A stretch of 64,000 nucleotides of DNA from Rebecca billardiae RCC1528. Its lineage: Eukaryota; Protista; Haptophyta. Shown here one piece after another: positions 13,591 through 36,308 of the stretch (its first letter is position 1; the number at the start of each line of letters is the position of its first letter). The stretch covers positions 372,001 to 436,000 of the forward strand of contig OZ251227.1 in assembly GCA_965240325.2 (NCBI GenBank), read 5' to 3'. The notes below the pieces were generated by a model. It was not told the DNA's origin and searched no databases. It was given only the letters and a program-made list of their open reading frames with translations. Both the position numbers and the translations under genes were made by a program.

Positions 13591-13850
13591 TACGACTTAC
13601 GCGAGAGGAGCGAGACTGACGAGACCGAGAGGTCGAGACCGGAGAAAAGGCCGGCAGCACCCAATTAATAAAAGCGCATCCGCGACCAAAAACCTGCCGA
13701 AACTAAAGTCGTAGTCACGATTTATTGCATTTTCCCGCGCAGCAGCGAGCCGCGCTTCCACTGGCGCGCTGCGCGCACGCTGCGTCCCGCGCCCAGTGGC
13801 CTCTCGCGGCGCGCGACGCTTGTGCGCGCGCTCGTGACGCGTGCGGGTTG

Positions 13851-16800
13851 ATGGGGCCGAAGAAGGCGGATAGCAGCGGGGCTGACGCCTCGGCTTATGA
13901 CTCGTGCGTCTCGGACGAGGCCGTGGCCAACGCCTGGCCAAAGGCGCCGACGCCGTGCGATGTCGCCCTGCCGCACGACATCGCCGCGGAGTGCAACAAG
14001 GCGAAGCTGGACAGGGGGACGATAGCGTGGACGCAAGTGCGTGATGCCGCGCGACCGATGCGATCATGCCACCGCGCGCATGCACCCGCGCGAGCCACCT
14101 GCAGCGCGAAGCGCTGACGCGGACGCTCTCGCGTGGCTGTGCACGCGCGGACCGCGCGTACACCGCGCACCGCGCACCGCACCGTCACGGCGCGCAGAAT
14201 CTGCTCAATGTGTCGCACAACCTGATCGAGAAGCACAGCGGATCGGCCGACCTGCTCGGCTACGCGCTGCTCTTCGCGCGCGCGGGTGCGTCGCGCGCTG
14301 CGCGCGGCGTTGCGCCATGCAGCCAGAGGTCGCAGGCCGCGCGCGCACTCGCGCGCAACCTCCCACCCGCGCCGCTCGCGACCCGGTGCGCCTGACGCCG
14401 CCTCTGCCGCGCGTGCACGGTGCGCACACGGCCGCGTCTCCCTCTCTCGGCTGCTCACGCACGCGCGCGCAGCGCTGAACTTTGGCGCAAACGTGAGTGG
14501 CGCGAGCGCGCGCGGCCCGCGCACTCTGGCGCGCTCGCCAGCCCGCGCTCACACTGGCTCGCGTACCGTGCGTGCGCTGCTGCGCGCACCGTCGGGCGTC
14601 GCCGGCCGCGCGCGCAGAAGATGGATGACGAGTCGACCATCATGTTCCTCAAGGCGCTGGCGCACGCCGTCGAGAAGTCGCCGGCCGAGAAGTCGCCGTT
14701 TGCGCTGAACGCGCTCACGCGCTGCCCGAGCGAGGGCGTGCTCGATGGGCTGGGCAGCCTCGGCGAGGCCGTGAAGGATCTGTGCGAGAAGATCGCGCAG
14801 GACGCGGACGTCCAGGTCGTGAGCAGGCGCACCGAGGAGGAGAAGCAGGCGAAAGCGACCAGCTCCCTCGCGCCCACGGCCCGCTCGGAGCGCAAGCAGA
14901 AGTTAAGCGCGGACAGCTTTGGCTTTGAGTGCGCCAAGAGGGGCGTGTACGGCTTCACGTTCGCCGAGCAGGTGGCGGTGCTCCTCCTGACGACGATGGG
15001 CAACACGCACAAGGTGCCCCAGAACGTGCGCCACATGTGGGGCGGACGGATCGCGACGCTCGACACGGGCGCCCTCGTCCGGAACCGGCTCCAGCGCATC
15101 AGCGACGCGCTCCTCGACGCGCAGAAGCCGCGGGGCGACGGCGAGCAGGAGCGTTTCGCCAAGCTGGCCACCGAGCTGCGCGAGGGCGCGCAGCTGTGCG
15201 CGGTGCTGCTGCCCAGGGACAAGGGCGCGGTGGCGAGCGTGGCGCGCGTGCTCTTCGGCTTCACGGTCCTCATCTTCGACACGACCGTGCTCAGCAGCCA
15301 CAAGGGCGTGCGATCCAAGCCGCGCGGCGCCGTGCGTGCGCCCGAGCTGGAGCAGCTGTACACGACCGCGCGGGAGCTGATGGACGACGTGGTCGCGGTG
15401 CTCGAGAAGGCGGACGCGACCGATGCGGAGCTCAAGTGCTACCGCCTGGCGCGCGAGCTCCGCGACGCGCTCGAGCCGACCGCTGCCGCCAAGGCGAAGG
15501 GCGCCGACGCGTCCAAGGGCCGCACGCTCAAGCAGATCGCCCCCGAGGTGCTCAAGGCGCACGACGCCTTCGTGCACGAGCTCAAGCCCAAGGTGGACGA
15601 GGTGCGCGCGCAGGAGTCTCGCGGAGACCGCGCCGACCCCGACGACCTGCCGCGCGCCTACCTCTCGACGCTGATCGGCTGCTCGCACGCGCTGTACAAA
15701 ATGCTGCTCAGCGGGCAGCGCGGGGTCGAGGCGAACAAGGTGCTCAAGGCGCTGCTCCCCCTCTGGTGCCGCCGCCAGCTGAACGACAGTGTCGCGTCCA
15801 ACGTGGTCCCGCTCGCGCCGGTGGTGCACCTCGTGAGCTCGGCGCTGAGGGACGCGATGCAGGCGGCGACCTTGCGGTCGCTCGTGTACACGCATCTGCG
15901 CGAGAGCATCGCGCAGGCCGTGGCGATCAAGGCGAGCGGCGGCGAGCGCGAGCAGTTAGTCGCGGCGGTCGCGTCCGAGACCTTGCTGCAGGTGCAGATG
16001 ATGGTCGGCTCGGACTCGGAGAGAAACCCGCCGTGGTGGGGCGAGCTGATGCCCGAGCTGGTCCTGCCGGCCGAGGACGACGACGAGCGGCGCCAGCCGC
16101 TCGCGCCCGCTGTCTTCCAGGTCACCGCCATCGCGGGCTGCTGGCCGGCGGCCGCGCTGCAGGACGACGGCGGCGCTGAGGCGCTCTTCGAGTTCCTCGA
16201 GGCGGCGTGGAAGCGCGTGCTGTGGCACCCGACCCACCTCAAGGCGCAGTTCTTCTTGATCGAGAGCGGCGTGCTCAAGCAGAAGTCGGACAAGGCGACG
16301 CTCGCGTTCGCGCGCGCGCTGCCCGCGGCGCTCACCTTCACGCTCGCGCGCGCGCGCGGCGGCAAGGAGTCGGTGCTCGCGTTCAAGATCGTGACCGAGG
16401 CCGTGCCGCCGCTGTTCGACATGCCGTCGACGTCCTCGGCCGACGGCGCGCTGGCGGTCGGCAAGCAGCTGTTGCGGCACAAGGTGCTCGAGGCGCTGCT
16501 GCGCGCCCACCACGCCGGCCTCGCGGGCGCGCCGCTCGACTCGTCGCAGCTCGAGGAGCTCCTCGCCGCCTTCTTCTCGATGCACACCGTGCTGACGCGC
16601 GCCTTCCCGCCGACCGGCCGGATGGCGACGCTGTGCGTGCGCAAGGCGCTGCACACGATGGCGGACAACCCCGAGCAGCGGCGCGCGTTCCGCGCGGGCG
16701 TGCGCCGCGTGGTCGCCATGGCGGAGAGCGAGGATCGGCTGATCAAGTTCCTCCGCCACCTGCTCGGCAAGCTCAGCCAGGACGAGGGCGCGGACGACGA

Positions 16801-19800
16801 GCGCGCGCGCGAGGAGGACGAGCGCTCGTGCGCGCCGCTGGCTGACATCCGCGCGGCGCTCGCGGGCGACGGCGAGGACGAGCTGGACGAGGGCGGCGGC
16901 GGCGCTGGCGCGCAAGGCGCTCGCGGGCTGTCCTCGAGCGCTTCTTCCGGCGCGCCCGCCTCGGACGACGCGGGCAGCGCGGGGAGGCGGCGGGAAGTCC
17001 CCGGCAGGCGGGCGGGTGCGCTGATTAAGCTCATAGGCGACTACCAGACCGAACTCCTCGTCAACCTCGAGCGCCTCGGGCTGATCGAGCCGCTGATCGC
17101 GATCGGCGAGCAGGAGGCGGAGAGGCTCGAGCGCGCGCCGCCGCCCGGGGCAGCCGTTCCGGGCGCCGACTCCTCCGACAGCGACGACGAGGTGGTGTCG
17201 AGCGCGGCCGGCGGCGACGGTGGCGGCGGCGGCGCGTGCGTGCGCTACTTCCGCCGGTGGTGCGCGCGCGTGATCTGTGCCATCTACGAGTCGAAGTGGG
17301 GCAGGTCCGACGTCGAGGATACCGGCACGGGCATGATCGGCGCGGAGTACGTGGCCCTCTGGTACGAGGCGGGCCTGCTCGCGCGGCTGCCGGGCGGGCA
17401 CTCTGTGCAGATTCGCAGCGCTGAGGGGGGCATGGTGCAGAGACTCATCAACGCCTGTGTCGAGCTGAGCTTGCGGCGCGACGAGCCAGCCTCGCTCTCG
17501 CTGGACAAGGCCTCGCGCGAGTTCGCCAAAGGGCCGCGCGCCGAGTCCTCCGGCGTGCTCCACAAGCTCTGGCGCGGCGTCGAGTCGATGCCGCGCGAGC
17601 AGCTCGAGCGCATGCGCTTGATCGTGCCGGCGGTGCTCGCGCTGATGAGTCGGCTGCTCGCCGACCCGCGGCTGCTCTCGAGGCTGCTCGAGGCGGCGTT
17701 CGAGGACGAGCCGGAGGAGCTGTTCAGCGCGCTGCGGGCGGCGCTACTCGTGCTCCAGCCGGCCGAGGCGCACGTCGCCGCGGAGTACTACGTCTTCGCG
17801 TACGAACTCTTCCCCGACCCGCTCCTGGAGGTGCTCAAGTACTGGCTCAAGACGTGCCCGGCCGCGCGGATCGTCGTCACCTTGGCCGGACCGTTGGAGT
17901 GCGAGCTGCGGGCGGTGTGCCTCGCCGCGGCGGCGATCGTGCGCGGGGAGCTGGGCGACGGGCCGATCCTGCGCATCTCCGTGCCGAACGAGACCATCGC
18001 GACCGCGCTGCTCGCGCTGCCCAAGCCGGTGCTGGGCGAGCGCGCGGAGCTGGACCCGGTCGTGGACGCGGTCGGGCAGCTGCTGCTGTCCGCGGGCAGG
18101 ATCGAGACCACCGAGCGCGGCAACGCGCGCGGCAACGCGCTCGGCACGAGGCTCGAGCTGCACCGCGCGGGCGGGATCACGGCAGCCACGCGGCACATCC
18201 GCGAGAGCGTGCTCCGCATGCACCGCTGGCAGCCACTGCCGCTCGAGGTGCTGCAGGAGCGCGCCGCCTACTCGCCCTCCGGCAAGACCCAGTCTCGGGC
18301 CCACGTGAAGGAGTTCGCGAAGGGGCTGCTGCGCAAACAGCACAGCTGGGCGGCCGATCTGCTGCACGTCAGCGCGGCGTACGCGAAGCAAGCGCACATC
18401 AAACTCGAGCCCACGCCCGAGCCCTCCCTCCGGACGCTCGAGTCCGGGCTGCTGCACAACGTGCTGCTGTGCGCGCGCGCGGGCGCGGCGCCGGCAGGGG
18501 CGCCCGCCGAGGCCGAGGCGGACGCCCTCGGCGCGTCCAAGGCGGCGGCCGAACTCAACACCGCGCGCGCGGAGCGGGTGCTCTCCTCGAGCTTCCGCGC
18601 CGGACTCGCCATGCTCACGGCCGACGAGCCCGAGCGCGAGTCGAGGATCGGCATGTGCGCTCTGTACGGCGTCGCGCTCGCCAAGGGGCCCAGCCCCGCG
18701 CCCAAGCTGCTGGCCGAGCTGGCCGAGCCGAGCGGCGCCCTGCACGCGCTGGCGGAGAGGCTCGAGATGCCAGACTTCATCGGCCTCGCGCACACCCTGG
18801 TGCGCGCGCGCGCGTGATCCCGCGCGTGCGTGCCGCCCTCGCGCAGCGCGCGCTCATGCGCGGCCCGCGCTGCTGCCGCGCTGCTGCCGCGCTGCTGCCG
18901 CGCTGCTGCCGCGCTGCTGCCGCGCTGCTGCCGCGCTGCTGCCGCGCTGCTGCCGCGCTGCTGCCGCGCTGCTGCCGCGCCGCGCAGAGCACGAGCCTCC
19001 TCCGGCCCGAGGCGGTGGAGCGAGGGCTGGCGCCGATCGACTCCGCCGCGCTCGCGGCGCGCGCGGAGCGCATCGCGCCCGTGCTCTCGCTGCCCTGCGC
19101 CGAGCTCGGCGCGATGTGCTCCTTCGATCTCCCGAGCTCCCTCGGCGCCGTGCCCGAGTTCGCCAAGGCGCACTGGCGCTCTGAGAGCAGGCCAAAGCAG
19201 CCCAAGCTGGTGAAGGACCACAACAAGGAGGCCGTGCGCGCGTACCCCGCGCTGCTCAACGCTGCGCGCGTGCTCCTCGCCGACACGCCCGGCACGGCCG
19301 AGCCGCTGGACACGCGCACCCTCGTGCGCGACCTCTCGCGCGCGTGCCATCAGCTGCAGCGCGTGTACAACCTGCCGGACGAACACTCGGCGGGCGGCGC
19401 GCTCGCGGACGAGCTCGCCGTGATCGGCGCGGCGGCCGAGCTGATGGAGCTGAGCGCGGATGGCACGCTGCACGTCGTGCTGCACCCGGAGCGGCAGCGG
19501 CAGCTCGCCGCGGCGCGCGCGCACGCGCCCGCCGCCGCCGACGATCCGCCCGCGGCGGACGCGCCGAGCGCGCACGCGCCCGCCGCCGCCGATGCGGACG
19601 CGGACGCCGCGCGCGCGCGCGAGCGCCTCAGCGATCTCGTGAGCGCCGACACGCGCTTCAGCCGCCTGCTGCTGCCCTCGTCCAAGGCGTGCGACGAGGC
19701 GACCAAGTCCATGGCGCAGGCGGTCGAGGTGCTCGAGCACCTCTCCAACGCGGTCGTGCTCGCCAACCACATCGTCGATGGCGAGGCGCTGCCGGCGCGC

Positions 19801-22781
19801 GAGGTGCCGCCGGGCTCGCCCGAGCGCGCGGCCGTCGCGGACGCGATGGCCGAGACGGTGCGCGCGCTGCGCCACATGCGGCCTCTGCGCGTGCTGGTGA
19901 ACGCGGCCGCGTTCGCCGCGGGGTACTTCCTGCACCACGCGCTCGGCGCGCTCGAGGAGCGCGCGACCGAGCTCGCGCGCGCCGCCGAGCGCGAGGCGGC
20001 CGCGACCTACATCGAGGCGCTGGAGGAGGAGGAGGGCGCGGCGAAGGCGAGGAAGGGCGCGAGGAAGGGGCGCGGCGGCGCGGCGGGCGCGGCGCCCGTC
20101 GGCACGCTCACGCCCGCCTCCCCCGCCGAGCCGCGCGGTGGCGGCGGCTCCGACGACGGCGGCGGCTCGAGCGACGACGCGGACGACGCGGACGACGACT
20201 CGAGCCTGCTGCAGATGGTGCGCACCAAGGAGAGGGCGATGGCGGCGGGCGGCAGCGGGAGCAAGGTGGCGACCGCGGCGGATGTTGTCGGCGTGGAGGC
20301 CACGGCGAACGGCGGCTCTGCTGAGCGCGCGCACGGCGGCAAGGCGGCGAGCGGCGCGGCGCGCGGCGCGGCGGGCGCGGCGGGCGGTGCTGACAAGCCG
20401 CCGCCACCGGCGCAGCAGCAGCAGCAGCAGCAGCAGCAGCCGGCCGCGCAGCCGCGCGCGTCGGCCAAGCCGGCAGCTGGCGCGGCAGCCGCAGCGGCCG
20501 ATGGCGGGGGCGCGCCTGCCAAGGGGGCGGCCGCGGCATCGGCCAAGCAGCCGCCGGGGAAGGCCGGGGCGGCGGTGGCGGCGGATGCGGGCAAGCCTGC
20601 GCGCGCAGCCGGCGCGCACTCTGCAGAGGGCGGCGCCGCAGAGGGCGCGGGCAAGCAGAGCCGAGCGCCGCCGGCGTCGAGACGCGAGGCCGAGCGGGCG
20701 AAGCTCGAGCTGGAGCGCGCCCTTGCCATCTCGCAGCAGGAGCAGCAGCAGGAGCAGGACACGGAGCTCTGCCCAAAGTGTAACCGGCGCTTCGAGCTGC
20801 TTTTGCTCATTACGCACGCGGGCGAGTGCGACGGCGAGGAGCAGTCGGCGCGCGCCGACGCGGGCGGCGGCGGCGGCGGCGGTGGCCGCCGCGGTGGCGG
20901 CGGCGGCAGCGGCGGCGGCGGCGGCGATGGCGGCGGTGGCGGCGGCGGCGGCGGCAAGCAGCACGGCGGCGGCAGCGCTGGCGGCAGCAAGCCGCCACCC
21001 CGAGCTGCAGCGGCGGCGGCAGCCGAACCAGCCGCGCCGTCGCCTCCGCCACCCAGCGCTGCGCAGCCGGCGCGGCAGCCCGCGCCCGCGCCCCGCGCCC
21101 CGCAGCCGGCGCGGCCGGCAGCGCCGCAGCAGGAGCGCGCTGCAGCCGCCACCGGGGCAGCGGCTGTGTCGCAGCCGCAGCCGCAGCCGCCGCTGCCGGC
21201 AGCGCCAACCGACGTCGCTCGCGCAGCCGCCGCCGCGCAGCCGCCCCAGCCCCAGCCCCAGCCCGCGCCGGCGCGGCTGCCGATACACGCGGACGGGCAG
21301 GGCGCCGCCGCCGCCAAGCCAGCGGCGCCGCGCGCGGCGCCGAGGGCTGAGGTGCCGGCTGCCGGCGCGGCGCGCGACGCCGCCGCGCCGCCGCCCTCGC
21401 GCGGCGCCGCGGCCGCCGCCGCCACCACCGGCGGCCGCCACCCGCGCGCGGCGGAGGCGGAGCGCATGGCGCTGAAGCAGCTGAAGGAATACCGCTCGAG
21501 CGTGTACGAGCAGGGCGGGCAGCGGATGGGCGTGTGGGTGCCCGCCAACGTGGTGCCCTACCTGATCGGCCAGCGCGGCGAGCGGATCAAGACCATGCGC
21601 GAGGCGAGCAACGCGTACATCGAGCCCGTGCCCAAGGAGCAGAAGGGCGCCGAGTACAAGATGAACAACGTGCTCTGCCGCAAGGTGCTGATCGCGCACG
21701 GCTCGTGCTCCAACATGGACGCGAGCGCGGTCACCAAGCCGTGCGAGCCGCGCGAGTTCGAGCGAGCGCGCGCGCGCATCGACACGGTGCTGCGCCAAAA
21801 GTGGAAGGAGGACCTGAGGCTGCACGTGGACAAGCTGCTCAAGAACATGCCGGCGCTGCCGCCCAAGCCGGCGCCGCCCGCGCAGCACGCGCCGCCCGCG
21901 CAGCCAGCGAGTGCGCCGCCGCCGCCACAGCACGCCGCGCCGCCGGCGCAGCCCGCGCCCACGGCGCCGGCCATGGCGCAGCCGGCGGTGCCGCCGAGCG
22001 CGCAGCCGATGGCAACGCCGCGGATGATGGCGCAGCCGATGGCGATGCCGATGGCGCAGCCGAGGCGCGGCCCCGCGCCGGGCGCTGACGACGGCGCTGC
22101 TCCGCAGCGGGCGCGCCCAGCCGCCCAGCCGGGCGCGCGCGGGGCCGGCCCGGACGCCGACAGCTGGAGGCACGTCGGTACCACGGCGGAGGCGGCCACG
22201 CATCCTGTGCTGCCGGCAGCACACGCGCGCCCGGAGCTGCCGGCTCCGCCGCCGGGCGCCGACGCGTTCGCGCACGCGCGGCCTCCGCCGCCGCCCGCCG
22301 CCGAGCCCGTGCCCGCGCGGACGCCCCTGCCGCCGGCCTCCATGCCCGCCGTCCAACCCCTCTGGCTGGACGGAAGTGCGTTCCCGGAGCTCGGCAGTGC
22401 GCCGGCGCGCCGGCCGCCCACGTCTGCGGAGGCCGCGCACCCGCCGCCGCCGCTGGGGCCGGGCGACGAGCTCTGGCGTGCGGGCTCCGTGCCGGGCGCG
22501 CTCGACGGCGGCGTGTACAACTGCGCGCACGCCATGCCTCACACGCCGTACGGCGCCGCACACCGCGCCAACCCGTTCGCCCCGCCCGGCGCATTCGGCG
22601 CGGGCGCGGTCGACGTCGCTGGCATGGCAGACCCGCTCGGCGCCGAGGCCGCGATGATGATGATCCCGCCGCCGCCGCCGCCGCCATTCATGATGGAGGA
22701 CGACGTGCCCGCGCGGGTGATGCAGCTGCCGCCGCCGCCGCCGCCGGACGAGCTGCCGGACGCGGCGCTCGCGGGCATGGA

Positions 22782-22813
<32 letters not shown>

Positions 22814-24167
22814 ACGCCGACCCGGGGTACGTGACTGGCGACGAGGTCGAGGACAACAACCCGTTCGCGACGGAGGTCGGCTCGCTCCTCAACCGCGCGG
22901 GTGCGCTCACGCGCCGCGCCGCGCGTCACGGCGCGCGCGGCCCGCTGCTGGTCCGGGGGCAGGATTCGAGCGGCGCTGAGCGGCGCGCATCGCCCTTGCC
23001 ACCTGCCTCCCTGGCGCGCGCCCTCGCGTGCGCAGGTGCGAACACGTGCTTCGTCAACGTGATCATCCAGATGCTCTGGGGCGTCGACGCCTTCCGCGAG
23101 GCCTTCTTCGAGCAGCGGCTGTCGCACAAGTGCGCGCGCGGCGCCGACGGCTGCGTGTTCTGCGCGACCGCGCAGATCTTCGAGTCGCTCAACGCGAAGG
23201 TGCAGTCGCAGCTCACGACGCCGGCGTCGGCGGAGGTGCTGCAGCGCGCGGTGAGCGTGCTCAACACCAACTTCGAGTTTGGCGAGAAGCAGGACGCCAC
23301 CGAGGTGCACGAGGCCATCCTGCACGGTGCGGGCCGCGCGCGCACGGCGCGCGCCCGGCCCGCGCGCGCCGGCGAGCGCGCGCTGACCCGAGCGCGCGCG
23401 GCCCCGCGGCCGCACTCGGCCCGAGCAGGCCTGCACAACGCGTTGTCGACGGGCGCGGAGGACGAGGACGACACGTTCGTGCGCGCCATCTTCAACAACG
23501 CCATCGAGGAGAACGTGACGTGCCAGGCGTGCAGCCACGTCGAGAAGCCGCACGTGTACGACACGTGGGCCGAGTACGTGTACTCGTTTGAGCTGATGGC
23601 GTCCATCGACTGCAACGGTGCGCGCGCGCGCGGCGGGCGGCGGTGCGCGCGGCCGTGGCGACAGAGCTGATCGCCTTTCCGGCCGCCGCGCGCGCCCGCG
23701 CTCGCGCAGGCGGCGGCGAGCGTCGCCGCTTCGACGCGGTGCTGCGCGAGCTCGTGGGCTCGTACCCGGGCAAGTGCCAAAACCCAAAGTGTGAGCAGGA
23801 CGTGTCGCTGTGTAAGCGGCAGCGCTCCGACCCACGCGTGTACTCGATCGTGATCGTGCACCCGAGCGGCTCCGAGTCGCAGGAGGACATCCGGAAGGCG
23901 CTCGACGCGGTCGACGACGTGATCGACGTGTCGGCGGTGTACACCGACGTCAGCGCGCCCCCGCGCGTCGCGCGCCTGAAGCACATCAACGCGTACGCGC
24001 TGGCGCACTACGTCGCGTTCACGTGGAGCGAGCCGCTGGGCGCGTGGCTGCTGCGCGACGACACGATGTGCAAGGTGGTCGGCCCCACATTCGAGGACGT
24101 GAAGGCTCGGTGCGTCGCCAACCGCTACCAGCCCGGCCTGCTCTTCTACGAGCGGATAGATTATTGA
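13851..24167 (+). CDS. Giant (~3100 aa) USP53/54-like deubiquitinase with helical N-terminus, UIM, UBZ-like Zn finger and KH domain (paralog 1)
   Basis: ATG 13851 (MGPKKAD). Three short 5' introns, then introns 18800-18987, 22901-23035, 23327-23428 and 23618-23709. Cys box LLNRAGANTCFVN, QDATE, His box HYVAF...WLLRDD, and C-terminal PGLLFYE. UIM-like ELERALAISQQE; CPKC...H...C finger; KH VPYLIGQRGERIKTMREAS. Confidence 0.85.
18867..18979 (+). repeat. 11-bp minisatellite (GCGCTGCTGCC) x ~10 inside an intron of USP paralog 1
   Basis: Perfect tandem units ending just before the CGCGCAG acceptor at 18987. Confidence 0.9.
22666..24156 (+). repeat. USP cassette copy 1, near-identical direct repeat of 34808-36297
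   Basis: Line-by-line comparison shows fewer than about 10 differences over ~1.5 kb, including three introns. Confidence 0.95.
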
Positions 24168-24281
24168 CAGATCAGCAAGTGTATCATTCAACTGACAAGC
24201 AGGATGATGATCGTAGTCAATGACAATGCTAACAGTGCGCACTGTCATAGTCTGTACTTAGCTACGAGTATAGCCTATATC

Positions 24282-24391
24282 TACAGTTTACTATGAAAAA
24301 GAGACGCACACAGCTCAGGCAGGCGACGAGTATTGGCTTACCCCCATACAGTTTACTAAGAATAAGAGACGCACACAGCTCAGGCAGGCGA
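24282..24391 (+). repeat. 45-bp direct repeat x2 (65-bp period) downstream of USP paralog 1
   Basis: TACAGTTTACTA.GAA.AAGAGACGCACACAGCTCAGGCAGGCGA at 24282 and 24347. Confidence 0.85.
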
Positions 24392-24678
24392 GATTGACGC
24401 CCGCCAACTGTCACCGCCCATGAAGCCGTCGCCGATGGTAAGCTAGCGCCGCCGGAAAAATTCGTTCAGCCTCACATCAGCCGTCCGCCTGCGAGGCCTG
24501 GATGAGGGCTGCGGCCGCCTCGCGGCGCGCCAGCGCCCGTCGTCCTCGCCCCACCGTCGTCCACAAAACGTCGTCGTCCGAACTCGCCGACCGGGCGCCG
24601 ATGCAACAGCACGCCGACAGGATGTAGTAGTATGGAACGTGGAGCCCCACTGTCGGTTGGGGAAGGCGTGTATCAAGC

Positions 24679-26232
24679 TCATGCTCGGAAGTCCCACAGC
24701 GGGACTTCTTCGAGCTTACAGGATCGCCAGTGAAGACCTCCCGCGCCCCTCGAGATCATACGGAGTTGGCGGCGAGATCGCGCTCTTGCGGCGGGCGGCG
24801 GGCGGGAGCGCGCGCCGGCGCTCGCTCGCGCGCTCGCTGCCCGCAGCGCGCGCGTCAGGTCGTCGTGAGCGCTTGCGCGCCGGCGCTAGGGCGCGTGCCA
24901 CCTGCGCACGCCGCTGGTTCGCGCCTGCGCGCTCTGCTCCGCCGCTGCGGCGCTTGCGAGCGCTCGCCGTGTCTTGCGCCGGCTCCCGGCCCGCCGCGTC
25001 GAAAGCCTGGTTGTGCGGCCAGCCAAGTGTGGCGTTTGCGGCTTGGCGCGCGAGCGCGCGACGCAGCGGATGGCGCGTGTGAGCCGTCCAGCCAGTGTCA
25101 CTCGCCTCGTGCGCCGCGCGCCGACCGCGCGCCCCAGATTCGACGACGAGCGCTGCTCGGTCACGGTGAGACGGGAGTCGGCGCTCCGCATCGCAGAGCC
25201 GCGTGTGGTCGCGCAGAAGAGGCCGCGCGTGGCCGGCGCGGCCGCTTTGTGCCGTGGTCTAGGCTTCAATCGCGTCCGCAGTCGGTGAGAACGCATGCCT
25301 CGCCCACGAGGTCACTCATCTTCTGCCCGTACACAGCGCGTGACACGTGAGGTGGATTCCAGAAGGTGTCTCGAGGTCACGCCGTCACCGATCGTAGCCA
25401 CATAAGCCATTGCGTGGAAGAGCTGCGCTCACGGAGATCGTGCACGTGTCATCAGCGCGCTACCAGACCATAACCATCGAGTTCTTGAAGCCGTATACCA
25501 ATGGAGTAGGATGGCTGGATGGGTTTGTTCGAGCCCACGGCTGGCGGCACGAGTGATACGGCCCGGCACGCAGAGTCAGGTCAAGTCGCCCACTCGTGAG
25601 TGCGGCGTGACCGCTTGGGCAAGGCAAGCAACTGCGGACGCGATTGAAGCCTAGACCACGGCACAAAGCGGCCGCGCCGGCCACGCGCGGCCTCTTCTGC
25701 GCGACCACACGCGGCTCTGCGATGCGGAGCGCCGACTCCCGTCTCACCGTGACCGAGCAGCGCTCGTCGTCGAATCTGGGGCGCGCGGTCGGCGCGCGGC
25801 GCACGAGGCGAGTGACGCTGGCTGGACGGCTCACACGCGCCATCCGCTGCGTCGCGCGCTCGCGCGCCAAGCCGCAAACGCCACACTTGGCTGGCCGCAC
25901 AACCAGGCTTTCGACGCGGCGGGCCGGAACCGGCGCAAGACACGGCGAGCGCTCGCAAGCGCCGCAGCGGCGGAGCAGAGCGCGCAGGCGCGAACCAGCG
26001 GCGTGCGCAGGTGGCACGCGCCCTAGCGCCGGTGCGCAAGCGCTCACGACGACCTGACGCGCGCGCTGCGGGCAGCGAGCGCGCGAGCGAGCGCCGGCGC
26101 GCGCTCCCGCCCGCCGCCGCCGCAAGAGCGCGATCTCGCCGCCAACTCCGTATGATCTCGAGGGGCGCGGGAGGTTTTCACTGGCGATCCTGTAAGCTCG
26201 GAGAAGTCCCGCTGTGGGACTTCCGAGCATGA
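24679..26232. mobile_element. Foldback element: ~603-bp inverted arms with 348-bp spacer, possible AAGC target duplication
   Basis: 24679-25282 is the reverse complement of 25631-26232 with few mismatches. AAGC immediately precedes and follows the element. Each arm starts with a subterminal hairpin (GCTCGGAAGTCCC-ACAGC-GGGACTTCTYCGAGC). Confidence 0.8.
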
Positions 26233-26457
26233 AAGCGGCATGACCAAAGGAATCAAGGCATGACAGTACCCGATCGCCCAACGGCCTTCCAGCCCACCGG
26301 ACTTCACTACATACCCGGTCCGGAGCAGGCATATCGACGCCTCAGCGTGCGAGTGCGCGCGAGCGGGCAGCGGCTGGCCGCAGGGCGTGGCAGGCTGCGG
26401 ACACAGCGCTCGCGTCCCAAGCGCGCCGAGGCGCCCGGCGACGCTAAACGCCCGGCA

Positions 26458-29400
26458 ATGGGCAAAAAGGGCAGCGAGGGCAGTGGCGCGGTCGCATCAC
26501 CTAAGGTGCCTGATGAGGGCACGACCTCGCTCGCTCTCACCCACCTCCCGTTCGATGACGGGCTCCCCGAGGAGATCTGCAACTTGCTCGGAAACGCCGA
26601 GTCCGATGCCAAGGCGGTGAAGGTGCGTGTGCGCCAGCTCGCGCGCGGAATCTCGCGGTCGATGCACGCCGGTGTGCCGATCTGACTGGCTATCTCGGGA
26701 GCCACGCGCCCGTGCCCGCCGGCGAACCCTCGCGACGGCTGATGGCTGTGCGTGCCGTCACGCGTCGCACCGTCGCACCCCACGCGCAGGACATCCTGAC
26801 CACGGCGATGAAGATGACGGGCGGCGATGAGAGCGCCCTCGGCCGTAAGCTCTTTTTGATGCGCGTCGGTGAGCGCCCTGCGCTGCCTCCCCGCCGCCGC
26901 GCCACGACGCTGCCCCGGGCGCGCGCACAGCCGCGCTCACGAGACCTGCTCGCGTGGCCTCTGCCGCTCCTCCGCGCTTGCGCAGTGATCCACGGCCTCG
27001 ACCGCGGCATACTGACACTCGATGAGGAGAATAAGGCCAAGTTTCTCGTGCTCGCGGTGGGTTGAGCCCCGCCACACTCGCCCCGCCGCTCATCGCGGGC
27101 ACAGCGCGCGCGTCGCCGTGCGCGGCCCGCGCGCTCACGCGCGTGTGTGCGCCTCCGCACGGCGCGCCGCAGGCGCGTGTGCTCTTCGGCGCGCTCTCGA
27201 GCAAGTTCAAGTCAACGGTTACCCGGCATGAGCAGGAGGCCTTCTTGACCGTGCTCAGCGTGAACGCGCTCTGCCTGGCTCCGCCTCCCGAGAAGCGGCC
27301 TGAGCAGCTCGGCTGCCTGAGCGCGGCGGCCGACTCGCTGTGCGCGCAGATCGAGAGTACGTACGGCGGGTGGGAGCGGCGTGACGACCACTTCGGCCAG
27401 GGCGTGCGCGTCTCGGACACGTTCATCTTCGGCTTCCACCTCTGCGAGACCGCGCTCATCCCGCAGGCGGGCTCGCAAGGGCTGGACGTGGTGCTGCCCG
27501 CCGAGTGCATGCGCGCCCTGCTCGCCGGCCCGTGGGCGCGGCTCATCCACGTCAACCACTACGCGCAGATGCCGGAGGGCCTGGGCGAGGCGGAGAAGCT
27601 TCTCGCGCGGCTGCGCGGCGACCTGACCGCGCTCGCTTCCGGCGTGCTCGCCGTGGAGGCCTCGCCGATGCCGAGCGGCGCCGCGCTACAGTTCGTGCGC
27701 ACGCGCTTCTTCATGCTGCACAGGCTGCTCGAGGCGCTCGGCAGGCAGCACGCCAAGATGAAGAGGGCGACGCTGGAGCGGCTCACCGCGCTGAAGGCGT
27801 GGGCGCGCGCGCTCTTCGAGGACACCGCGCCGCTGCTCGAGCGCATGAAGGCCTCCGACCACGAGGTCAAGTGCTTCGCCCTCACCTCGCAGCTCCTCGT
27901 CGGCGCGCGCCCGCCCGGCTTCAGCGTGAAGGTGACGCTGGGATTGATCAACGATGCGCACACGCACGTGTGCGCGGAGGTGAAGACGTTCAAGGGGCAG
28001 GTGGAGGGCGATCACGAGCAGGTGGAGGGCGACCAGGACAGCCTCCTCGCGAAGTGCGACTACCAGCTCGACAAGCCCTACTTCCACAAGGTCTACGGCG
28101 ACGGCAAGGAGGCGCTGCACCCGCTCGGCGGCCTGCTGAGCGGCTACCTCGCGCCGTTGGGCAGCGCGCTGCTCAAGGAGAAGGCGCAGAAGCTGCTGCT
28201 CGATGTGGGCCAGAAGGCGCTCGGCGCGATGCCGCACCCGTGCGCGATGCTCATGCTCGTCTGGCACGTGGACGAGTACAACAAGGTTCCGTGGTTCCAG
28301 TGCACGTTGATGTTCAACTCGCTGGCGGCGATGATGCCGAAGCGCGAGTTCAGGTCGCAGTGCGCGCAGTGGGCGCGCGCTGTGCACACGCTCGTGCCCC
28401 CCGGGCCGCTGGTGGGCGAGGCCGAGTCGGCGGTGGACGCGGCGTATGGGCAGTACTTCAGCGGCATCTTCTCGCGCACGTCGGTGCTGCTCGAGTTCTG
28501 CAGGCTCAGCTCCACGGAGCACACTGCCGAGGAGCTCCTCGAGAGCCGTCTCGAGATGCTGGAGAGTCTGCTGCCGCACGCCTGGGGCGCCAAGGCCAAG
28601 CCGCCTGCGCCGCCGCAGCCGCCTGCGCCGCCGCAGCACCTGCTCGAAGCGCACGCGTACACCTTCCTGCTCGCCGCCGCCGTGCAAGCGGGCGCGCTGC
28701 TGCACGGCTCGGAGGGCCCGCTGAGCTTCGACCTGCTCGACGATTTCCTCGGCAATGCTCTGCCGATGCTGCTCGGCGCGCCGCGGTATCCTGCCGATTG
28801 CCGTGTCGCGATCGATGCTTTGGCCTGCGTCTGCGGGTCGGACCGCTACGCGAGCAATCTCGTGCGCTGGCTGCGCCTCCAGACGGCGGCGCCGTTGCGG
28901 GTCATGAGCGCCGTGTGGTACACCAGCTTGCGCGCTCAGCTCGCGCTCATCCCAACCTCCATCGCCCAGCTCACGCCCGCCGCGCTGCTCGAAGGCTCCC
29001 TCAGCGAAGCGCTGCTCGGCCTGAGCAGCAATCTGAGCACCACGTCGATCCCCGCGCAAGTCACGAGCAACCTGACGGCCGAGTGCGTGCAGCTGCTGCA
29101 GAAGCACATGGTGGAGGGCGCGCGGTCGGTGACACGGGCCGTGCTGCTGGCATGCGCGACGATGGCCGCGCACGCCGCCGCCGCTCCAGCCGCGGCGGCC
29201 ACGCCCGCGCCATTGGACGAGCCGGCGGCGGGGGCGGCGGAGGCGGAGGCGGCGGCGGTGGAGGCGGCGGCGGCGGCGGCGGTGGCTCCGGCGGCGGCGG
29301 CGGCGGCGGCCGTGCCGCAGCCTGCGGAGGCGGCCGTGCCGCGCGAGGTGCAAGTTGCGCTTAGCGACGGCTTGTATGTGCTGCTCGTGTGGCTGTCGCA

Positions 29401-32400
29401 CGCGGCGGTACTCATGCAGAAGCTCCCCGCGCCGTCTGCCGCCAAGGTCGGGAGCAGCCTGCTCGGGCACGCGCTGGTCGAGCTGCTCGTCGCGCCCGCT
29501 GAGCAGCCGGCGGCGGGCGCCGAGACCGCCGTGCAGCTTGGGCTGCGCGCGGGCCTGGACGCCTCTTGGGACATCGCGTCGCAGGAGAAGCTCAACGAGG
29601 CGGCGAACACTCTGAATTGGGTCCTCACCAAGCCCGGCCTCGCGCGGCTGATGCAAGAGCTCGGGCCGCGCAACCCGCAGCTGCTCACCGCGCTCACGCG
29701 CGCGCTCTCGCCGGCGCGCGAGGGGGCGAGGGGCGAGCAGCCGGCGCAGCTCGCGCGCGTGGACTCGTTCACACTCAGCTCGGACAGCGAGGCGAGCACG
29801 CTCAGCACGGAGACGGGCGACTCGGAGCTGTGGCCGAAGTCGGGCCTCGCGCTGGCCGAGCTCGGGCTGTGCGCGCTCAACCTGCTCACGCTGCTGCCGC
29901 ACGAGGCGGTGCGCGCGCTGCCGTTAGTCTCGCGCTACGCGTTCGCGCCGGAACCGGAGCGGGTCGCGGAGCTGAACACGGTGCAGGAGACGCTGCACCG
30001 CTGGATGGGCGCCGTGCTGCGCGGGGCGATGCTGGACGCTGAGGAGCTGCACCAGTGCATCGTCATGAACACCGACGGCCGGCGGGCGCTCAGTCGGCCG
30101 GACGAGCGGGTGGACGGCCTGCTGCTCGTGCCGCTCCAGCTGTACCGCGCGCACTTTGCCGCTCAGAGCGAGAGCTGGCGCGCTGTGTGGTGCTGGAGCG
30201 ACTACGTAGCCGTCCTCGAGGACCGCCGCGGCGTGCTCTTCCACTGCTGGCACGCCCTCTTCAGCGAGACGCAGGAGCGCATCGAGGGGCAGCACGACCA
30301 GCTCTACATGGGCGAGCTCTTCGACCAGCTGCTGGCCGTCGTGAGCGAGCCGGAGACCCTGCGAACGTACCACGAGGCTTTGAAGGATTCCGCTGCTCGC
30401 CGACCCGGGGAGGAGAATGGCTACTTGCGCTTTGTGAGGGATCGCGCGGCCTCGCTGAAGCGGATCGCGCAGACGCTCGAGTTTGCCGTGCACGTGCTCC
30501 GGGTGCTCTTCTCGAGCGTGGACGCGGTCGTTCAGCTGCTCTTCGAGCAGCTCCTTTTCGCTCGGAAGAGGGTCTCGCCGGAGGAGATGCGCGAGCCGTC
30601 CATCTACCACGAGTATCTTCTCGAGGTGCTCGAGGTGCTCGACCCCGCGCTGCTGCCCTACGAGGAGGAGGCGCTGAGCGTGCTGCTCGACCCTGGCCTC
30701 CTCGCGAGGATGATTATCGACCTCACCAACTACCTCTGGGCCCCGCACGAGGAGGAGGAGGAGGGGGAGGAGGGGGAGGAGGATGAGCACCTGGTCACGA
30801 GCACCGCCTACAAGTTCTACGATTGTGTGGCACGCGCTGTCAGGGACATCAGGCAGCTGGATCGGGCTACCGACGGCTCGCGGGCGCATTACGACTACGC
30901 GCGTTTCGCGGACGAACTGGGCAGGTGGGGTCTGGGCGACCACTGGGTGTCCGCGGTTGAGCGCTGCGTGGAGAAGGAGCTGCACAGCACCGCGCTAAGC
31001 CGGCTGAACGACCTCTTCGCCGGCGAGCGCAATGAGCGCACGTGCTCGTCCTTGGCCACCCGATTCGGCGTGCGGCAGCTCGAGAGCGTCAGCGACGCGC
31101 AGGCGCGGGTGGTGAGCCAGTTGGTGATGGACGTGCGCTACTCGCACCTGACCAGCGCGGCTAGGCAGCTCATCGGCGGCCGGTCTCGCTTCCGCGTCAG
31201 CGTGGCACACGCGTGGTCGGCGCGCATCGCGCTGGTGACGAGCGCGATCCGCGAGCTCATGAAGAGCCGGTCGGGGCAGGCAGCGTCCGCCGAGCACGCC
31301 GCCGGGCCCGCCGATGAGGTGTCGCGGACCCTCGAGCGCATCCGCAACACGCTGCTCGCCGGGGTGGCCGGGCTGATGATCAGCCGCACGGGCGAGCCGG
31401 ACGCGCGCGTGGAAGACGCGGTCCTGCTCGCGGACGTGGCCGGGCATGCCGTCCACGAGCTGCGCTGGCACACTCGGCCCTGGGGGAAGGGGGAGGCGGT
31501 CGCGCACTCTTGGATGCTGCTCGCCGTCGCGATCAACACCGTCTTCAAGGGCCCGGGGCCATCGGCGGACGAGGAGGCGCCGACGGCGTGGCTCGGCGGG
31601 CTGCCGCGCGTGCGCAGCTTCTGTGCGGAGCTGGACGACGCCTTCAAGACGCGCAACACGTGGTTCTCCTACTTCGTGCTGGGCCCGGTGCCGGAAGCGG
31701 TGCGCGCCGTGCGCGCCGCCACGCCGCCACGCCGCCCGCCGCGCGCGAACGCTCGCGCACGCCCTCAACCCGCCCCGTCCCCTCTGCGCCCTCACCTCGG
31801 CGCACGCGCGCGCTTGCGCGCTCTGCAGCAATTGGCGGGCAAGTGGCTGCCGCAGACCGCGGAGGGGCTCAAGGCGACCGAGCGCTCCGAGGCGGTGCGC
31901 GAGCGGCTGCGCGCGTTCTGGGCGTCCCTCGAGCCCGAGTGCCGCGCCGAGCTCTGCCGCCTGCCGCGCGCCCCCGCCGCCGCGTCCGAGCGCGCGCCGC
32001 TCAAGCTCGAGCTCGGCCGGCGCTTCCGGCCCGAGCGCAAGATGGGCGAGGAGGAGAAGGCGTGGCGCACCGAGCTGCCCAAGCAGCTCTTGGAGCTGCT
32101 GAGCGCGGCGGAGCGGCGGGAGGAGGCGGAGGCGGATGCGGTCGCCGCCGCCGCGCCGGCCGACGCGGCCGCGCCCGCGGGCGGCTCGTCGGCCCAGGCT
32201 GGGCGTGGCGCGCTGAGCTTTCCGCTGCGCGTTATGCACAGCTACGTGCGCTCTCTCGAGGGCGAGAGCCTCTCGGAGGCAGACGGCGCGGAGCTGAAGC
32301 TGCTCCACGCGGTGCTGAGCGTGCTGGATCTCGGCTGTGCGGGCGCATCGCCGCGCGAGAGCGCGGCCGACGAGCGCGCGATCGACGCCCTGCTCGAGGC

Positions 32401-35400
32401 GGAGTCGCAGCTGGGGCACCTGCTGCTGCCGCCGGCCAGCTCGATCGAGCACGCGCGCGAATACCTGGTCTGGCACTGCGAGCTGCTGCGCAGCCTGAGC
32501 GCCACGTGCTCGCTGGCGCGGGAGATCGACGCCGGGGTGCACTGGCGCGTGTCGCGCGAGCAGCAGCCGCCGTTCAAGCAGCACGAGCTGAGCAAGGCGC
32601 TGCGCATGACGGTGGACAAGATTGCGGGGCGGCCGGCGTTGCGCACGCTGCTCACAGCGGCCGCCTTCCACGCGGGCCAGATTGCGACCGAGATCCTGAG
32701 CGGGCTCGTGCCCGCGGCCACGAGATGGGCGGAGGAGGAGCGGGAGAAGCGCGCGGACCAGCTGCTCAGCGCGGCCGCGGCCGAGCCGGGCGCGGCGGAG
32801 GAGTCGACGGGCGGCAAGCGCGGCGGCAAGAGGGGCAAGCCGAGCGCGGCGCGGACGGCGACGCCGCCGGTTGACGCGCCACCGCCCGCGCTGCCGAGCC
32901 CGCGGTCCAAGGCGCGAGCGAACGAGTCGGACGAGTCCGTGAGCGACGACGACGGCCAGGCGCTCGAGGCGCTGGTGCGCAACAAGATGCGCACCGCGCC
33001 GCAGCCCAAGGTGGCGAGTGCGCTGACGGTGCACGACGCGGGCGGAGGCGCGCCGGGCCGCGGAGGCGCCGCGGTCAAGCCCGGCTCCGGCGCGGGCGGC
33101 GTGCCCGCGCTCACAAAGCGACCGTCGGCCGACAGCAAGGCGCAGCCCGCCCGGCAGCCGGCGGGCGGCAGCCGCGCGATCACGGTCGTGCACCGCGCGC
33201 GCTCCGCCGCCGAGCGCGCCGCGGAGGAGGAGGAGGCGCAGCTCATTCGCGCGATGGAGGCGAGCGCGATGGAGCACAGCTCGAGGCAGGCCGCGGACGC
33301 GCGCGGTGCCGACGACGAGACGCCGTGCCCCTTCTGCGGCGTGCGCATGTCCGCCGTGGAGATCGTCGAGCACGTGGAGCGCGAGCACAGCGACGGCGCC
33401 GCGCCGCCGGCCGTGCCCAGCGGCGGCTGCGCGCCCACTGCCGCCGCCGATGCCTCGGCCAGGCAGGACCCGGCGCTCGCGATGGCGACGGTGCCGGTGC
33501 CGAGGGGCGGCGCCGCGGGCGGCGCGTGCGCGGCGTGCGCCGAGGTCGCGCCCACGGCGTCCTCCGACAGCGGTACCAGTCGGAGGCGAACGCGCGGCGG
33601 GCGGAAGAGGGGCTCCGCCCTGCCTCCCGCCGACGGCCCGCCGCCCGCGCCGCCGCCCGCGCCGCGGCCCGACGACGACTTCGACGGGCTGGAGGAGGCG
33701 CTGCAGCGCACGCTCAAGCTGTCGCTCGCGGAGGCGGGCGCGGAGGCGGGGGCGGAGGAGCCGGCGCTGCACGGCGCGCTGTACGGCGGCCTGGGCGCGC
33801 AGCCGTACGCGCAGCCGCAGCCGCAGCCGGCGGTGGACTCGCTGGCGCTGGCGTACGGCGGCGCGGGCGCGCGCGCGGCGCAGCCGACGGCGCTGCCGCC
33901 CGCGAGCGGGCTGGCGCACGCACGCGCCGCCCTGCCGCACGCGCCGCCGCCGCAGCCGGCGCCGAGGGCGGGCGGCGGCGGCAGGGCGCCGATGTGCCGC
34001 ACCTTCGTCTTCGAGCGGAACGGGACGCGGCTGGGCGTCTGGGTCGAGGCCGAGTTCATCCATCACCTCACGGGCGCGCGGCTGGCGCAGATGCGCCAGC
34101 TCAGCGGCGCCGCCATCACCATCGAGCCGGCGGAGAGGCCCGCCTCCGAGCACCGGTTTGGCAACCGGCCGTACCGCAGGCTCAACGTGTCGCACGCGGA
34201 CTCGCACGAGCCGCTGGACAAGCCCAACTTCAACCAGGTGCGGGACGTGGTGCAGAGCGCGCTGAAGTCGATCGCCGCCGAGCACATGGGCGGCGGCGGC
34301 GGCGGCGGCGGCGGCGCGCGGGCGCACGGCGGGCACGGGGCGCTGCCCGGGGCGCCGCCTAACTCGGCGCCGCCTCCGCCGCTCGACATGAGTGCCTTCC
34401 CAGCGCTCGGCGCCGCGCCACCGCGCCAGCCGCAGCCGCACCAGCTGCAGCAGCCGCAGCTGCCGCAGCAGCCGCAGCTGCAGCCGACGCCGCAGCCGAC
34501 GCCGCAGCATGCCGCGCCACAGCCGCCGCCGCCCTCGCTGCTGGACCCGCGCGCGCAGAACTTCCACTTCCAGCCGCCCCCAGCGGCCTCCGCCGGGCGC
34601 GCGCCCCCCGGCCTCCCGACCCTTGACCCACTGCCGGCCGCGCCGCTGGGTGCGCTGGGTGGCGCTGGGCCGTCAGGCTTGCTGGGCAGCGGCGCGCTGG
34701 AGCGGGTGGGCTGGCGGTCGGGCACAGCCGAGGGCCCGTGGGGCGGCGCCGCCCCGACGCTGCTGCCCCCGGTGCCGTCCTTCGCGCAGCACCCCGGAGC
34801 GCAGCTCCCGCCGCCGCCGCCGCCGCCGCCGCTTTTCATGATGGAGGACGACGTGCCCGCGCGGGTGATGCAGCTGCCGCCGCCGCCGCCGCCGGACGAG
34901 CTGCCGGACGCGGCGCTCGCGGGCATGGAGCTGCCGCCGCCGCCGCCGCCGCCCGACGCTGACCCGGGGTACGTGACTGGCGACGAGGTCGAGGACAACA
35001 ACCCGTTCGCGACGGAGGTCGGCTCGCTCCTCAACCGCGCGGGTGCGCTCACGCGCCGCACCGCGCGTCACGGCGCGCGCGGCCCGCTGCTGGTCCGCGG
35101 CAGGATTCGAGCGGCGCTGAGCGGCGCGCATCGCCCTTGCCACCTGCCTCCCTGGCGCGCGCCCTCGCGTGCGCAGGTGCGAATACGTGCTTCGTCAACG
35201 TGATCATCCAGATGCTCTGGGGCGTCGACGCCTTCCGCGAGGCCTTCTTCGAGCAGCGGCTGTCGCACAAGTGCGCGCGCGGCGCCGACGGCTGCGTGTT
35301 CTGCGCGACCGCGCAGATCTTCGAGTCGCTCAACGCGAAGGTGCAGTCGCAGCTCTCGACGCCGGCGTCGGCGGAGGTGCTGCAGCGCGCGGTGAGCGTG

Positions 35401-36308
35401 CTCAACACCAACTTCGAGTTTGGCGAGAAGCAGGACGCCACCGAGGTGCACGAGGCCATCCTGCACGGTGCGGGCCGCGCGCGCACGGCGCACGCCCGGC
35501 CCGCGCGCGCCGGCGAGCGCGCGCTGACCCGAGCGCGCGCGGCCCCGCGGCCGCACTCGGCCCGAGCAGGCCTGCACAACGCGTTGTCGACGGGCGCGGA
35601 GGACGAGGACGACACGTTCGTGCGCGCCATCTTCAACAACGCCATCGAGGAGAACGTGACGTGCCAGGCGTGCAGCCACGTCGAGAAGCCGCACGTGTAC
35701 GACACGTGGGCCGAGTACGTGTACTCGTTTGAGCTGATGGCGTCCATCGACTGCAACGGTGCGCGCGCGCGCGGCGGGCGGCGGTGCGCGCGGCCGTGGC
35801 GACAGAGCTGATCGCCTTTCCGGCCGCCGCGCGCGCCCGCGCTCGCGCAGGCGGCGGCGAGCGTCGCCGCTTCGACGCGGTGCTGCGCGAGCTCGTGGGC
35901 TCGTACCCGGGCAAGTGCCAAAACCCAAAGTGTGAGCAGGACGTGTCGCTGTGTAAGCGGCAGCGCTCCGACCCACGCGTGTACTCGATCGTGATCGTGC
36001 ACCCGAGCGGCTCCGAGTCGCAGGAGGACATCCGGAAGGCGCTCGACGCGGTCGACGACATGATCGACGTGTCGGCGGTGTACACCGACGTCAGCGCGCC
36101 CCCGCGCGTCGCGCGCCTGAAGCACATCAACGCGTACGCGCTGGCGCACTACGTCGCGTTCACGTGGAGCGAGCCGCTGGGCGCGTGGCTGCTGCGCGAC
36201 GACACGATGTGCAAGGTGGTCGGCCCCACATTCGAGGACGTGAAGGCTCGGTGCGTCGCCAACCGCTACCAGCCCGGCCTGCTCTTCTACGAGCGGACTG
36301 ACCACTGA
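26458..36308 (+). CDS. Giant (~3000 aa) USP53/54-like deubiquitinase with UIMs, Zn finger and degenerate KH (paralog 2)
   Basis: ATG 26458 (MGKKGSE). Three 5' introns, an in-frame intron 31700-31828, and three USP introns (first 35043-35176). UIM-like EEEAQLIRAMEASAME and EEALQRTLKLSLAE; CPFC...H....H finger; ERLRAFWASL motif; USP domain essentially identical to paralog 1. Confidence 0.85.
34808..36297 (+). repeat. USP cassette copy 2
   Basis: Matches 22666-24156. Identity starts in a (CCG)n run and stops within the last codons before the stop. Confidence 0.95.

Follow-up and report, generated by a model that had tools for sequence, protein, structure and literature searches.

Human USP53 and USP54 are K63-linkage-directed deubiquitinases (PMC12037411), and USP54 is the top solved relative of the catalytic domain that we analyze here. 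This domain closes two giant tandem genes, A and B, in a 64,000-nucleotide (nt) stretch of the genome of the haptophyte Rebecca billardiae RCC1528 (contig OZ251227.1, positions 372,001 to 436,000), which we refer to as the window. As in the human proteins (PDB 8c61), a Cys box, a His box, and an Asp can be aligned, and a CxxC pair lies in the fingers region. In USP53 and USP54, however, the USP domain is N-terminal and carries a long tail, whereas here it forms the extreme C-terminus of a 3,000-amino acid (aa) protein, and identity is ~30-35%. With two relatives elsewhere on the contig, A' and A'', which end in a RING, A and B make up a family of four members. Here, we describe the near-identical ends of A and B, which are very probably the product of interlocus gene conversion, and then compare A with its RING-ended sisters to assess how these genes were assembled.

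Two kinds of described system resemble this locus in how one module is kept alike between genes. In ordinary interlocus conversion (PMC3924832, PMC3966223), as here, tracts are kilobases long, have sharp edges, homogenize introns and silent sites, and join tandem or same-chromosome partners. We see no difference in principle; what is notable is that one gene carries two tracts, with two partners of different domain architecture. In the paired receptors Siglec-11/16 (PMC5701461), Siglec-5/14 (PMC4042635), and CEACAM (PMC2832619), one module is likewise near-identical by conversion, while the rest of the protein and its output differ. In our case, A and B have the effector in common, whereas A and A' have the presumed targeting body in common and opposite predicted enzymatic tails. 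These are intracellular ubiquitin enzymes, however, rather than surface receptors, A and A' lie 2 Mb apart and inverted, and both repeated conversion and a functional pairing would be hypothetical here.

In domain layout, A' and A'' are like MEX3-type KH + RING ligases and IAP RINGs (PDB 5zi6, 3eb5), with KH_1 and then a C-terminal zf-C3HC4_3 RING. MEX3 has two KH domains, however, whereas A' and A'' have one, with an 1,800-aa helical body, a UIM, and a CCHC finger in front; this is a likeness of layout, and we claim no orthology. A C-terminal USP of the same subtype is found in proteins of 960-3,590 aa from Micractinium (KAL4433821.1, KAL4433789.1), [Myrmecia] bisecta (KAK9809101.1), and Populus (XP_061947507.1), one of which has CCCH RNA-binding fingers. 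These four proteins showed no similarity to the family outside the USP, and no KH, UIM, or UBZ matches.

The USP cassette of genes A and B

Coordinates are window positions unless prefixed C10, which denotes the same contig (3.49 Mb). Searches and structure predictions were run on single exons or uninterrupted open frames, and protein lengths were computed from exon coordinates (Table 1). By blastn, 22666-24156 (A) aligns with 34814-36297 (B) at 98.93% identity; the alignment has 1491 columns and contains 9 mismatches and 2 gap openings. The same match was recovered by a repeat finder and by base-by-base alignment. An earlier reading of the DNA by eye and open frame (the sequence-only reading) had put the number of differing sites below ten, three introns included, which our alignments bear out; its start position in A was exact, while the B copy starts at 34814, not 34808. 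Two of the mismatches lie at the edge of the (CCG)n run, in which a 6-nt indel corresponds to two Pro. Unambiguous identity begins past this run, at 22687 in A and 34835 in B. From there, the synonymous changes are C/T at 22818 and at 23043 (GCC/GCT, AAC/AAT), the replacements are A/T at 23215 (Thr/Ser) and G/A at 23919 (Val/Met), and the introns differ by G/A at 22918, a 1-nt indel at 22955, G/C at 22957, and G/A at 23351. The two amino acid changes and the poly-Pro length change are those already listed in the sequence-only reading.

Both edges of the tract are abrupt. At the 3' end, identity stops 9 nt (three codons) before the stop, as had been claimed, and the proteins end in IDY* (A) and TDH* (B); four of these nine bases differ, with length, Asp, and stop position kept. 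The 5' edge had been placed at the USP domain boundary, which is not where it falls: it lies ~71 codons upstream of the Cys-box exon, within the Pro-rich linker. Beyond the edges, A and B are unalignable upstream of the (CCG)n run, and the 200 nt next to either edge align at 51-53% identity, which is the level of shuffled sequence (49-56%). While the three cassette introns are 98%, 99%, and 100% identical between A and B, identity in introns 1 and 2 and in the mid-gene intron is 54-61% (shuffled 50-56%). This contrast between near-identical cassette introns and other introns at shuffle level shows that the identity of the cassette goes far beyond chance, and beyond protein-level constraint. 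Exactly two copies of the cassette were found in the 72-Mb assembly, by DNA search and by protein search with two different exons.

The nine differences within the cassette are weakly clustered, by post hoc measures (P 0.13 and 0.04), which is slight evidence for more than one conversion event. At five of the seven substitutions, gene A carries G or C where gene B carries A or T, a bias between the copies that is not significant, and neither GC content nor G+C at third codon positions (GC3) sets the tract apart from the rest of the genes.

The bodies of A and B retain traces of common descent. They are collinear and ~28-32% identical, with similarity confined to three islands (Table 1), which agrees with the sequence-only description of the upstream parts as barely alignable. 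Semi-global alignment of the bodies was uninformative and was replaced by local scores with shuffles. By this measure, cognate exon pairs reached z-scores of 4.8 and 7.3, above all 100 shuffles, whereas non-cognate pairs did not. The collinear islands and the cognate scores together indicate that the paralogy is real; judged from these alignments, A and B are old tandem paralogs within the four-member giant ubiquitin-system family.

Several features of the DNA in and around the cassette were observed in passing. All three cassette introns are phase 1 and split a Gly codon after its first G; they contain 81-90% G+C, with long GC hairpins predicted. Introns 2 and 3 have dozens of short matches (74-90%) genome-wide, on both strands. 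We considered a mobile intron family; as the matches are short, GC-rich, and on both strands, they are probably compositional. Between A and B lies a foldback with arms at 24679-25282 and 25631-26232 (~604 nt, 98-100% complementary, 348-nt loop), and any role of this structure (24679-26232) in conversion is speculation. The 3' flank of gene A contains a 45-nt direct repeat (24282-24391; copies 96% identical, 65 nt apart), a 28-nt piece of which recurs ~900 nt downstream of the A' stop.

Gene models and protein modules

In the models of genes A and B, every intron is GT-AG, the summed exon length is divisible by three, and the only stop is the terminal one. G+C content of the window is ~70%, and GC3 is 0.92-0.99 in the chosen coding frames. 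P0001, a contiguous transcript-derived MMETSP protein from another organism, crosses each of the three cassette junctions uninterrupted and so confirms them; the 5' introns, the mid-gene introns, and the 20-nt exon 3 of gene A were predicted from the DNA itself. The common intron positions described in the sequence-only reading hold for introns 1 and 2, in position and phase (0, 1), and for the mid-gene intron in its phase (0 in both genes), but the third 5' intron is placed differently in A and B. The mid-gene intron of gene B (31700-31828) is in frame and free of stops, so open reading frame finders read through it. The model of gene A, like that of A', requires a 20-nt micro-exon (14473-14492) flanked by two GC-rich introns, where gene B has a 71-nt exon. 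Upstream of the tract, the proteins comprise ~2725 aa (A) and ~2616 aa (B), longer than the ~2500-aa bodies first described.

Table 1. Positions of genes A and B, their exons, the near-identical tracts, and other features in the window.
Feature	Position	Strand	Details
Gene A	13851..24167	+	inferred 8-exon coding sequence, 3108 aa
Gene A exons	13851-14036, 14198-14285, 14473-14492, 14618-18799, 18988-22900, 23036-23326, 23429-23617, 23710-24167	+	
Gene B	26458..36308	+	inferred 8-exon coding sequence, 2997 aa
Gene B exons	26458-26622, 26790-26868, 26986-27056, 27173-31699, 31829-35042, 35177-35467, 35570-35758, 35851-36308	+	
Putative conversion tract, A copy	22687..24156	+	linker units 2-3, USP53/54-like domain, three phase-1 introns 22901-23035, 23327-23428, 23618-23709
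Putative conversion tract, B copy	34835..36297	+	introns 35043-35176, 35468-35569, 35759-35850
(CCG)n run	22666..22686 (A); 34814-34834 (B)	+	poly-Pro, 5' tract edge
Gene A 5' tract	13828..19980	+	6.15 kb, starts 23 nt upstream of the ATG and ends with the helical body (~1823 aa)
Gene A single-copy middle	19981..22686	+	low-complexity linker, UIM + CCHC zinc finger (~20706-20802), KH, Pro/Gln-rich linker with first poly-Pro unit
Gene B zinc finger (CCHH, Di19/UBZ-like)	33317..33397	+	UIM-like stretch precedes; zf-Di19 E 6e-5, 23.6 bits, under Pfam cut-off 27.5
Gene B KH-like module	33998..34267	+	homologous to A 21493-21795; GXXG lost
Island 1	A exon 4 residues 168-281 vs B exon 4 residues 131-241		30% identical, E 4e-4
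Island 2	A exon 5 residues 201-301 vs B continuous frame from 27173, residues 1734-1835		32% identical, E 3e-4
Island 3	KH region A vs B		28% identical, E 2e-9

Both proteins have the same order of parts: a helical body, a UIM, a zinc finger, a KH-like module, a Pro-rich linker, and the C-terminal USP53/54-like domain. The USP domain takes up the last ~312 residues of each protein. The open frame of the gene A cassette that reads through cassette introns 1 and 2 matches PF00443 at 58.1 bits (cut-off 23.9), and P0001 scores 85.9 bits. Among solved structures, USP54 (8c61) gave E values of 1.1e-9 with the Cys-box exon and 5.1e-8 with the last exon, while the next USPs had E >0.2. The catalytic motifs align with those of USP54 as NTCF/NSCF, AHYVAF/KHYSTF, and RDD/FDD, and the residues are the same in A and B. 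Based on this alignment, we infer that both proteins end in a USP53/54-like deubiquitinase whose Cys/His/Asp triad is intact.

Upstream of the catalytic domain, the linker consists of three ~20-residue units, each of which closes with a poly-Pro run. The KH domain of gene A (21532-21636) matches KH_1 at 26.3 bits with GXXG present. The corresponding module of gene B had no Pfam KH match; the two regions match each other by blastp at E 7e-9 and 2e-9 in two comparisons. Across the family, the GXXG loop is conserved as GQRG in A and as GPGG in A' and A'', whereas B (GARL) and the MMETSP relative have lost it; the members may therefore not all bind RNA alike. The zinc finger has the CCHH form in B and P0001 and the CCHC form in the three other members.

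The bodies, ~1,800-1,900 residues per protein upstream of the UIM and zinc finger, resemble little that is described. A Pfam scan of the bodies of A and B returned no family, and neither B body residues 1-1900 nor A exon 4 had a homologue in word-based searches. Leads from the Atlas were weak and HEAT/ARM/TPR-like (scores <=0.90). Single-sequence AlphaFold models of the first 1150 residues of exon 4 are all-helical at low confidence (mean pLDDT 43 for A and 41 for B).

Beyond this genome, close relatives (58-61% identity) comprise short fragments from marine metagenomes and a single MMETSP transcript; across the three USP exons, P0001 has 55-74% identity. More distant relatives, large proteins of green algae and one of poplar with a C-terminal USP, match the last cassette exon at 32-37% identity. 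A metagenome scan for further relatives returned no match, and a narrow literature search yielded no description of the giant family.

RING-ended sisters and the composition of gene A

A genome search with exon 4 of gene A yielded two more copies on the same contig, 2.0-2.4 Mb away. A' (C10:2436598-2428187, minus strand) lies 2.04 Mb from A and has an intact five-exon model of 2601 aa, and A'' lies around C10:2767403-2777866 on the plus strand. Past the body, both encode a diverged UIM, CCHC finger, KH module, and Pro-rich linker, and then a C3HC4 RING in the last 55 residues, with no USP. The RING tails of A' and A'' match zf-C3HC4_3 at 42.7 and 41 bits (cut-off 27), with cIAP2 and MEX3C as best PDB matches, and the single KH_1 in each scores 23.8 and 21.5 bits (cut-off 21.5). 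A search of the genome with the KH module yielded A, A', A'', and one ankyrin gene; the more distant module of B fell below the search threshold. Exon 4 of gene B has no other copy at the DNA level in the genome. The family thus has four members, the USP-ended A and B and the RING-ended A' and A''.

The three parts of gene A have different relatives. Its 5' tract is 95.7% identical to A' (C10:2436621-2430515, minus strand), with introns 96-98% identical and the protein body 92% identical. Outside the tract, identity to A' is 35% upstream of 13828 and 47% after 19980. The same 5' tract is 82-89% identical to A'' (C10:2767403-2775518), and A' and A'' are 87-89% identical to each other over their full length, with a similar distance in body and tail. 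The middle of gene A (19981-22686) is single-copy in the genome; the next-best match is the KH region of A', 67% over 534 nt. At the protein level, the KH region of A is 49% identical to that of A' and 28% to that of B, and a small tree groups (A,(A',A'')) with support 89/99. On these comparisons, gene A is a three-part mosaic of an A'-like body, its own middle, and a USP in common with B. The distance between A' and A'' is alike in both halves, whereas A is near A' only in the 5' half, which suggests that A is the recipient of the 5' tract. We infer that the A' lineage was the donor of the first 6.15 kb of A, after the A'/A'' split. The 231 mismatches in 6071 positions between A and A' are unevenly spread (chi-square p 0.002), and the longest clean run is 279 nt (P 0.005); this could reflect several patches of different age, and varying selection could give the same pattern.

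Further observations concern the sisters and their surroundings. A'' contains an in-frame internal duplication of ~1.9 kb (C10:2768028-2774762), in which the equivalent of window 15077-16968 occurs twice within one 2245-aa open frame. The next gene downstream of A'' encodes a JmjC/cupin domain (Cupin_8, E 2.6e-10; L016:3930-5816). The ankyrin gene (C10:2058819-2062520, minus strand) was considered as a family member and rejected as a different gene, with two KH-like modules (motif R-L-G-L-W-V-P) followed by ankyrin repeats; this type of module is therefore used outside the giant family too. Within the mid-gene intron of gene A (18865-18985), an 11-nt unit, CCGCGCTGCTG, is repeated ~11 times; A' is five units shorter, and this change in unit number is the sole non-triplet indel between A and A'.

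Rates within the A family were estimated as ratios of nonsynonymous to synonymous divergence (dN/dS) by NG86, which is biased upward at GC3 ~0.95; A vs B is saturated. For exon 4 of A and A', dS is 0.030 and dN 0.041 (ratio 1.38); the ratio in the first part of exon 5 is 1.17, and exon 1 has six replacements and zero silent changes. By codon position, A and A' differ at 4.4%, 4.1%, and 3.3% of sites, and introns 1-3 differ at 2.75%, an independent yardstick that points in the same direction as the body dN/dS. Despite these changes, there are 0 stop codons where ~5 would be expected without constraint, and all eight exonic indels are multiples of three (one intronic indel, of 55 nt). The comparison of A' with A'' gives 1.46 and 1.14 for the body, 0.74 for the middle plus tail, and 0.23 for the RING (body vs RING, Fisher p 0.005). 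The bodies are thus kept open while their protein changes about as fast as silent DNA. The body ratios of 1.1-1.5 are not significantly above 1 (chi-square p ~0.1; codon positions 1 + 2 vs introns, p 0.14). They fit diversifying selection, and likewise very loose constraint on a helical scaffold.

Origin and significance of the mosaic

We consider it highly likely that the common end of A and B arose by true interlocus gene conversion between homologous USP ends, as the sequence-only reading had proposed. Conversion is supported because introns and silent sites are as identical as replacement sites, the edges are abrupt, and old homology persists outside. Identity at silent and intron sites within the USP tract stands against old divergence on both sides, and the same is true of the A-A' tract; the homologous counterpart outside the USP tract is seen in weak collinear high-scoring segment pairs, the cognate z-scores, the first poly-Pro unit, and the three-codon end. 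According to this model, the final 1.47 kb of the two genes, which holds two linker units and four USP exons with their three introns, would have been equalized recently by non-allelic conversion, with one USP copy used as the repair template for the other. The tract would have halted where usable homology ended: on one side at the (CCG)n run, in a linker that evolves fast, and on the other 9 nt short of the stop. The first 6.15 kb of A would have been overwritten by A'-lineage sequence via the same process, somewhat earlier (~3.8% vs ~0.5% divergence). Gene A would have been natively USP-ended, with no domain gain in the conversion of the USP tract. Outside the tract, the first poly-Pro unit is kept and diverged in both A and B, which gives three units as in the outgroup P0001; this unit, the three-codon end, and parsimony together indicate that the USP end of A is older than the conversion. 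With B and A scored as USP and A' and A'' as RING, the tree (B,(A,(A',A''))) requires one change if USP is ancestral.

Three other explanations were weighed against conversion. A recent domain swap, in which a RING-ended A took the USP cassette of B via poly-Pro (CCG)n microhomology and so passed from ligase-type to deubiquitinase-type, would agree with the affinity of the body and middle of A to the RING-type genes (KH 49% to A' vs 28% to B; tree support 89/99) and with a 5' junction inside a CCG run, since such runs occur in the linkers of all members. Yet outside the tract, A retains a USP-type first poly-Pro unit, a B-like three-codon end, and the same stop position; no RING remnant or A'-like 3' flank was found downstream of A, bar the 28-nt repeat match, and parsimony counts two changes rather than one, so we find a swap quite unlikely. 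It is extremely improbable that an assembly or polishing artefact made the second cassette copy or its near identity. Although near-identical repeats are a known failure point, no result here points to an artefact: each copy is bordered left and right by unique sequence of a single 3.49-Mb contig, the repeat spans only 1.5 kb, the copies differ at 9 sites and 2 indels, neither reading frame and none of the six splice sites is disrupted, and polishing would be unable to raise unalignable introns to 99%.

A selected modular system, the remaining alternative, would extend conversion rather than replace it: conversion would be maintained to match effectors, and the A/A' targeting body, while bodies diversify under conflict, like paired activating/inhibitory immune receptors. 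The A-family body ratios (1.38, 1.17, 1.46) against 0.23 in the RING, codon positions 1 + 2 that change as fast as position 3 and introns in frames that stay open, and the coincidence of two independent tracts with structured modules are consistent with such a system. But the ratios do not significantly exceed 1, NG86 inflates them at this GC3, and there are four genes only and no array; overall, we judge it unlikely. The sequence-only reading had gone in this direction, with diversifying sensor bodies, a constant effector, and an immune-type array. Of this, the fast bodies with open frames persist, short of significance; the effector is not constant, as the closest relative of A's body ends in a RING ligase tail rather than a USP, and the genome count of two USP cassettes and four family members with two different effectors does not amount to an array.

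Several points weigh against conversion as set out above. The evidence comes from a single genome assembly, and either gene could have been the donor of the USP tract. USP ends as old as the bodies would require either homogenization that continued from the duplication onward or an unusually tolerant event. The 5' tract, at 6.15 kb, is a long stretch to have been converted at once between loci that are inverted and 2 Mb apart, and it may instead reflect several events. Finally, the deubiquitinase and ligase activities are both predicted from motifs.

Partial gene conversion between duplicates is a textbook mechanism, and the novelty here lies in its object. This is a family of ~2,600-3,100-aa proteins known to date from this alga alone, apart from fragmentary marine relatives, in which one helical scaffold with ubiquitin-binding and KH modules bears either a USP53/54-type or a RING tail, and in which one member appears to be joined from a ligase-type body and a deubiquitinase tail in common with its neighbor. 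The pairing of A and A', a predicted deubiquitinase and a predicted ligase on one fast-evolving body, is a hypothesis. In its fullest form, which we regard as unlikely, A and A' would be a matched eraser/writer pair: their 1,800-aa targeting body, 92% identical by repeated conversion and changing at or above the neutral rate, would be coupled to a K63-type deubiquitinase in A or a RING ligase in A', with B supplying or sharing the deubiquitinase module, and the whole would act as a combinatorial ubiquitin switch on fast-evolving, possibly conflict-driven targets. If A and A' do bind the same partners, they would be a natural experiment in aiming opposing ubiquitin enzymes at one target, and would also illustrate the transfer of whole modules from gene to gene by conversion. 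The cassette itself provides a non-animal USP53/54 relative for questions of K63 specificity.

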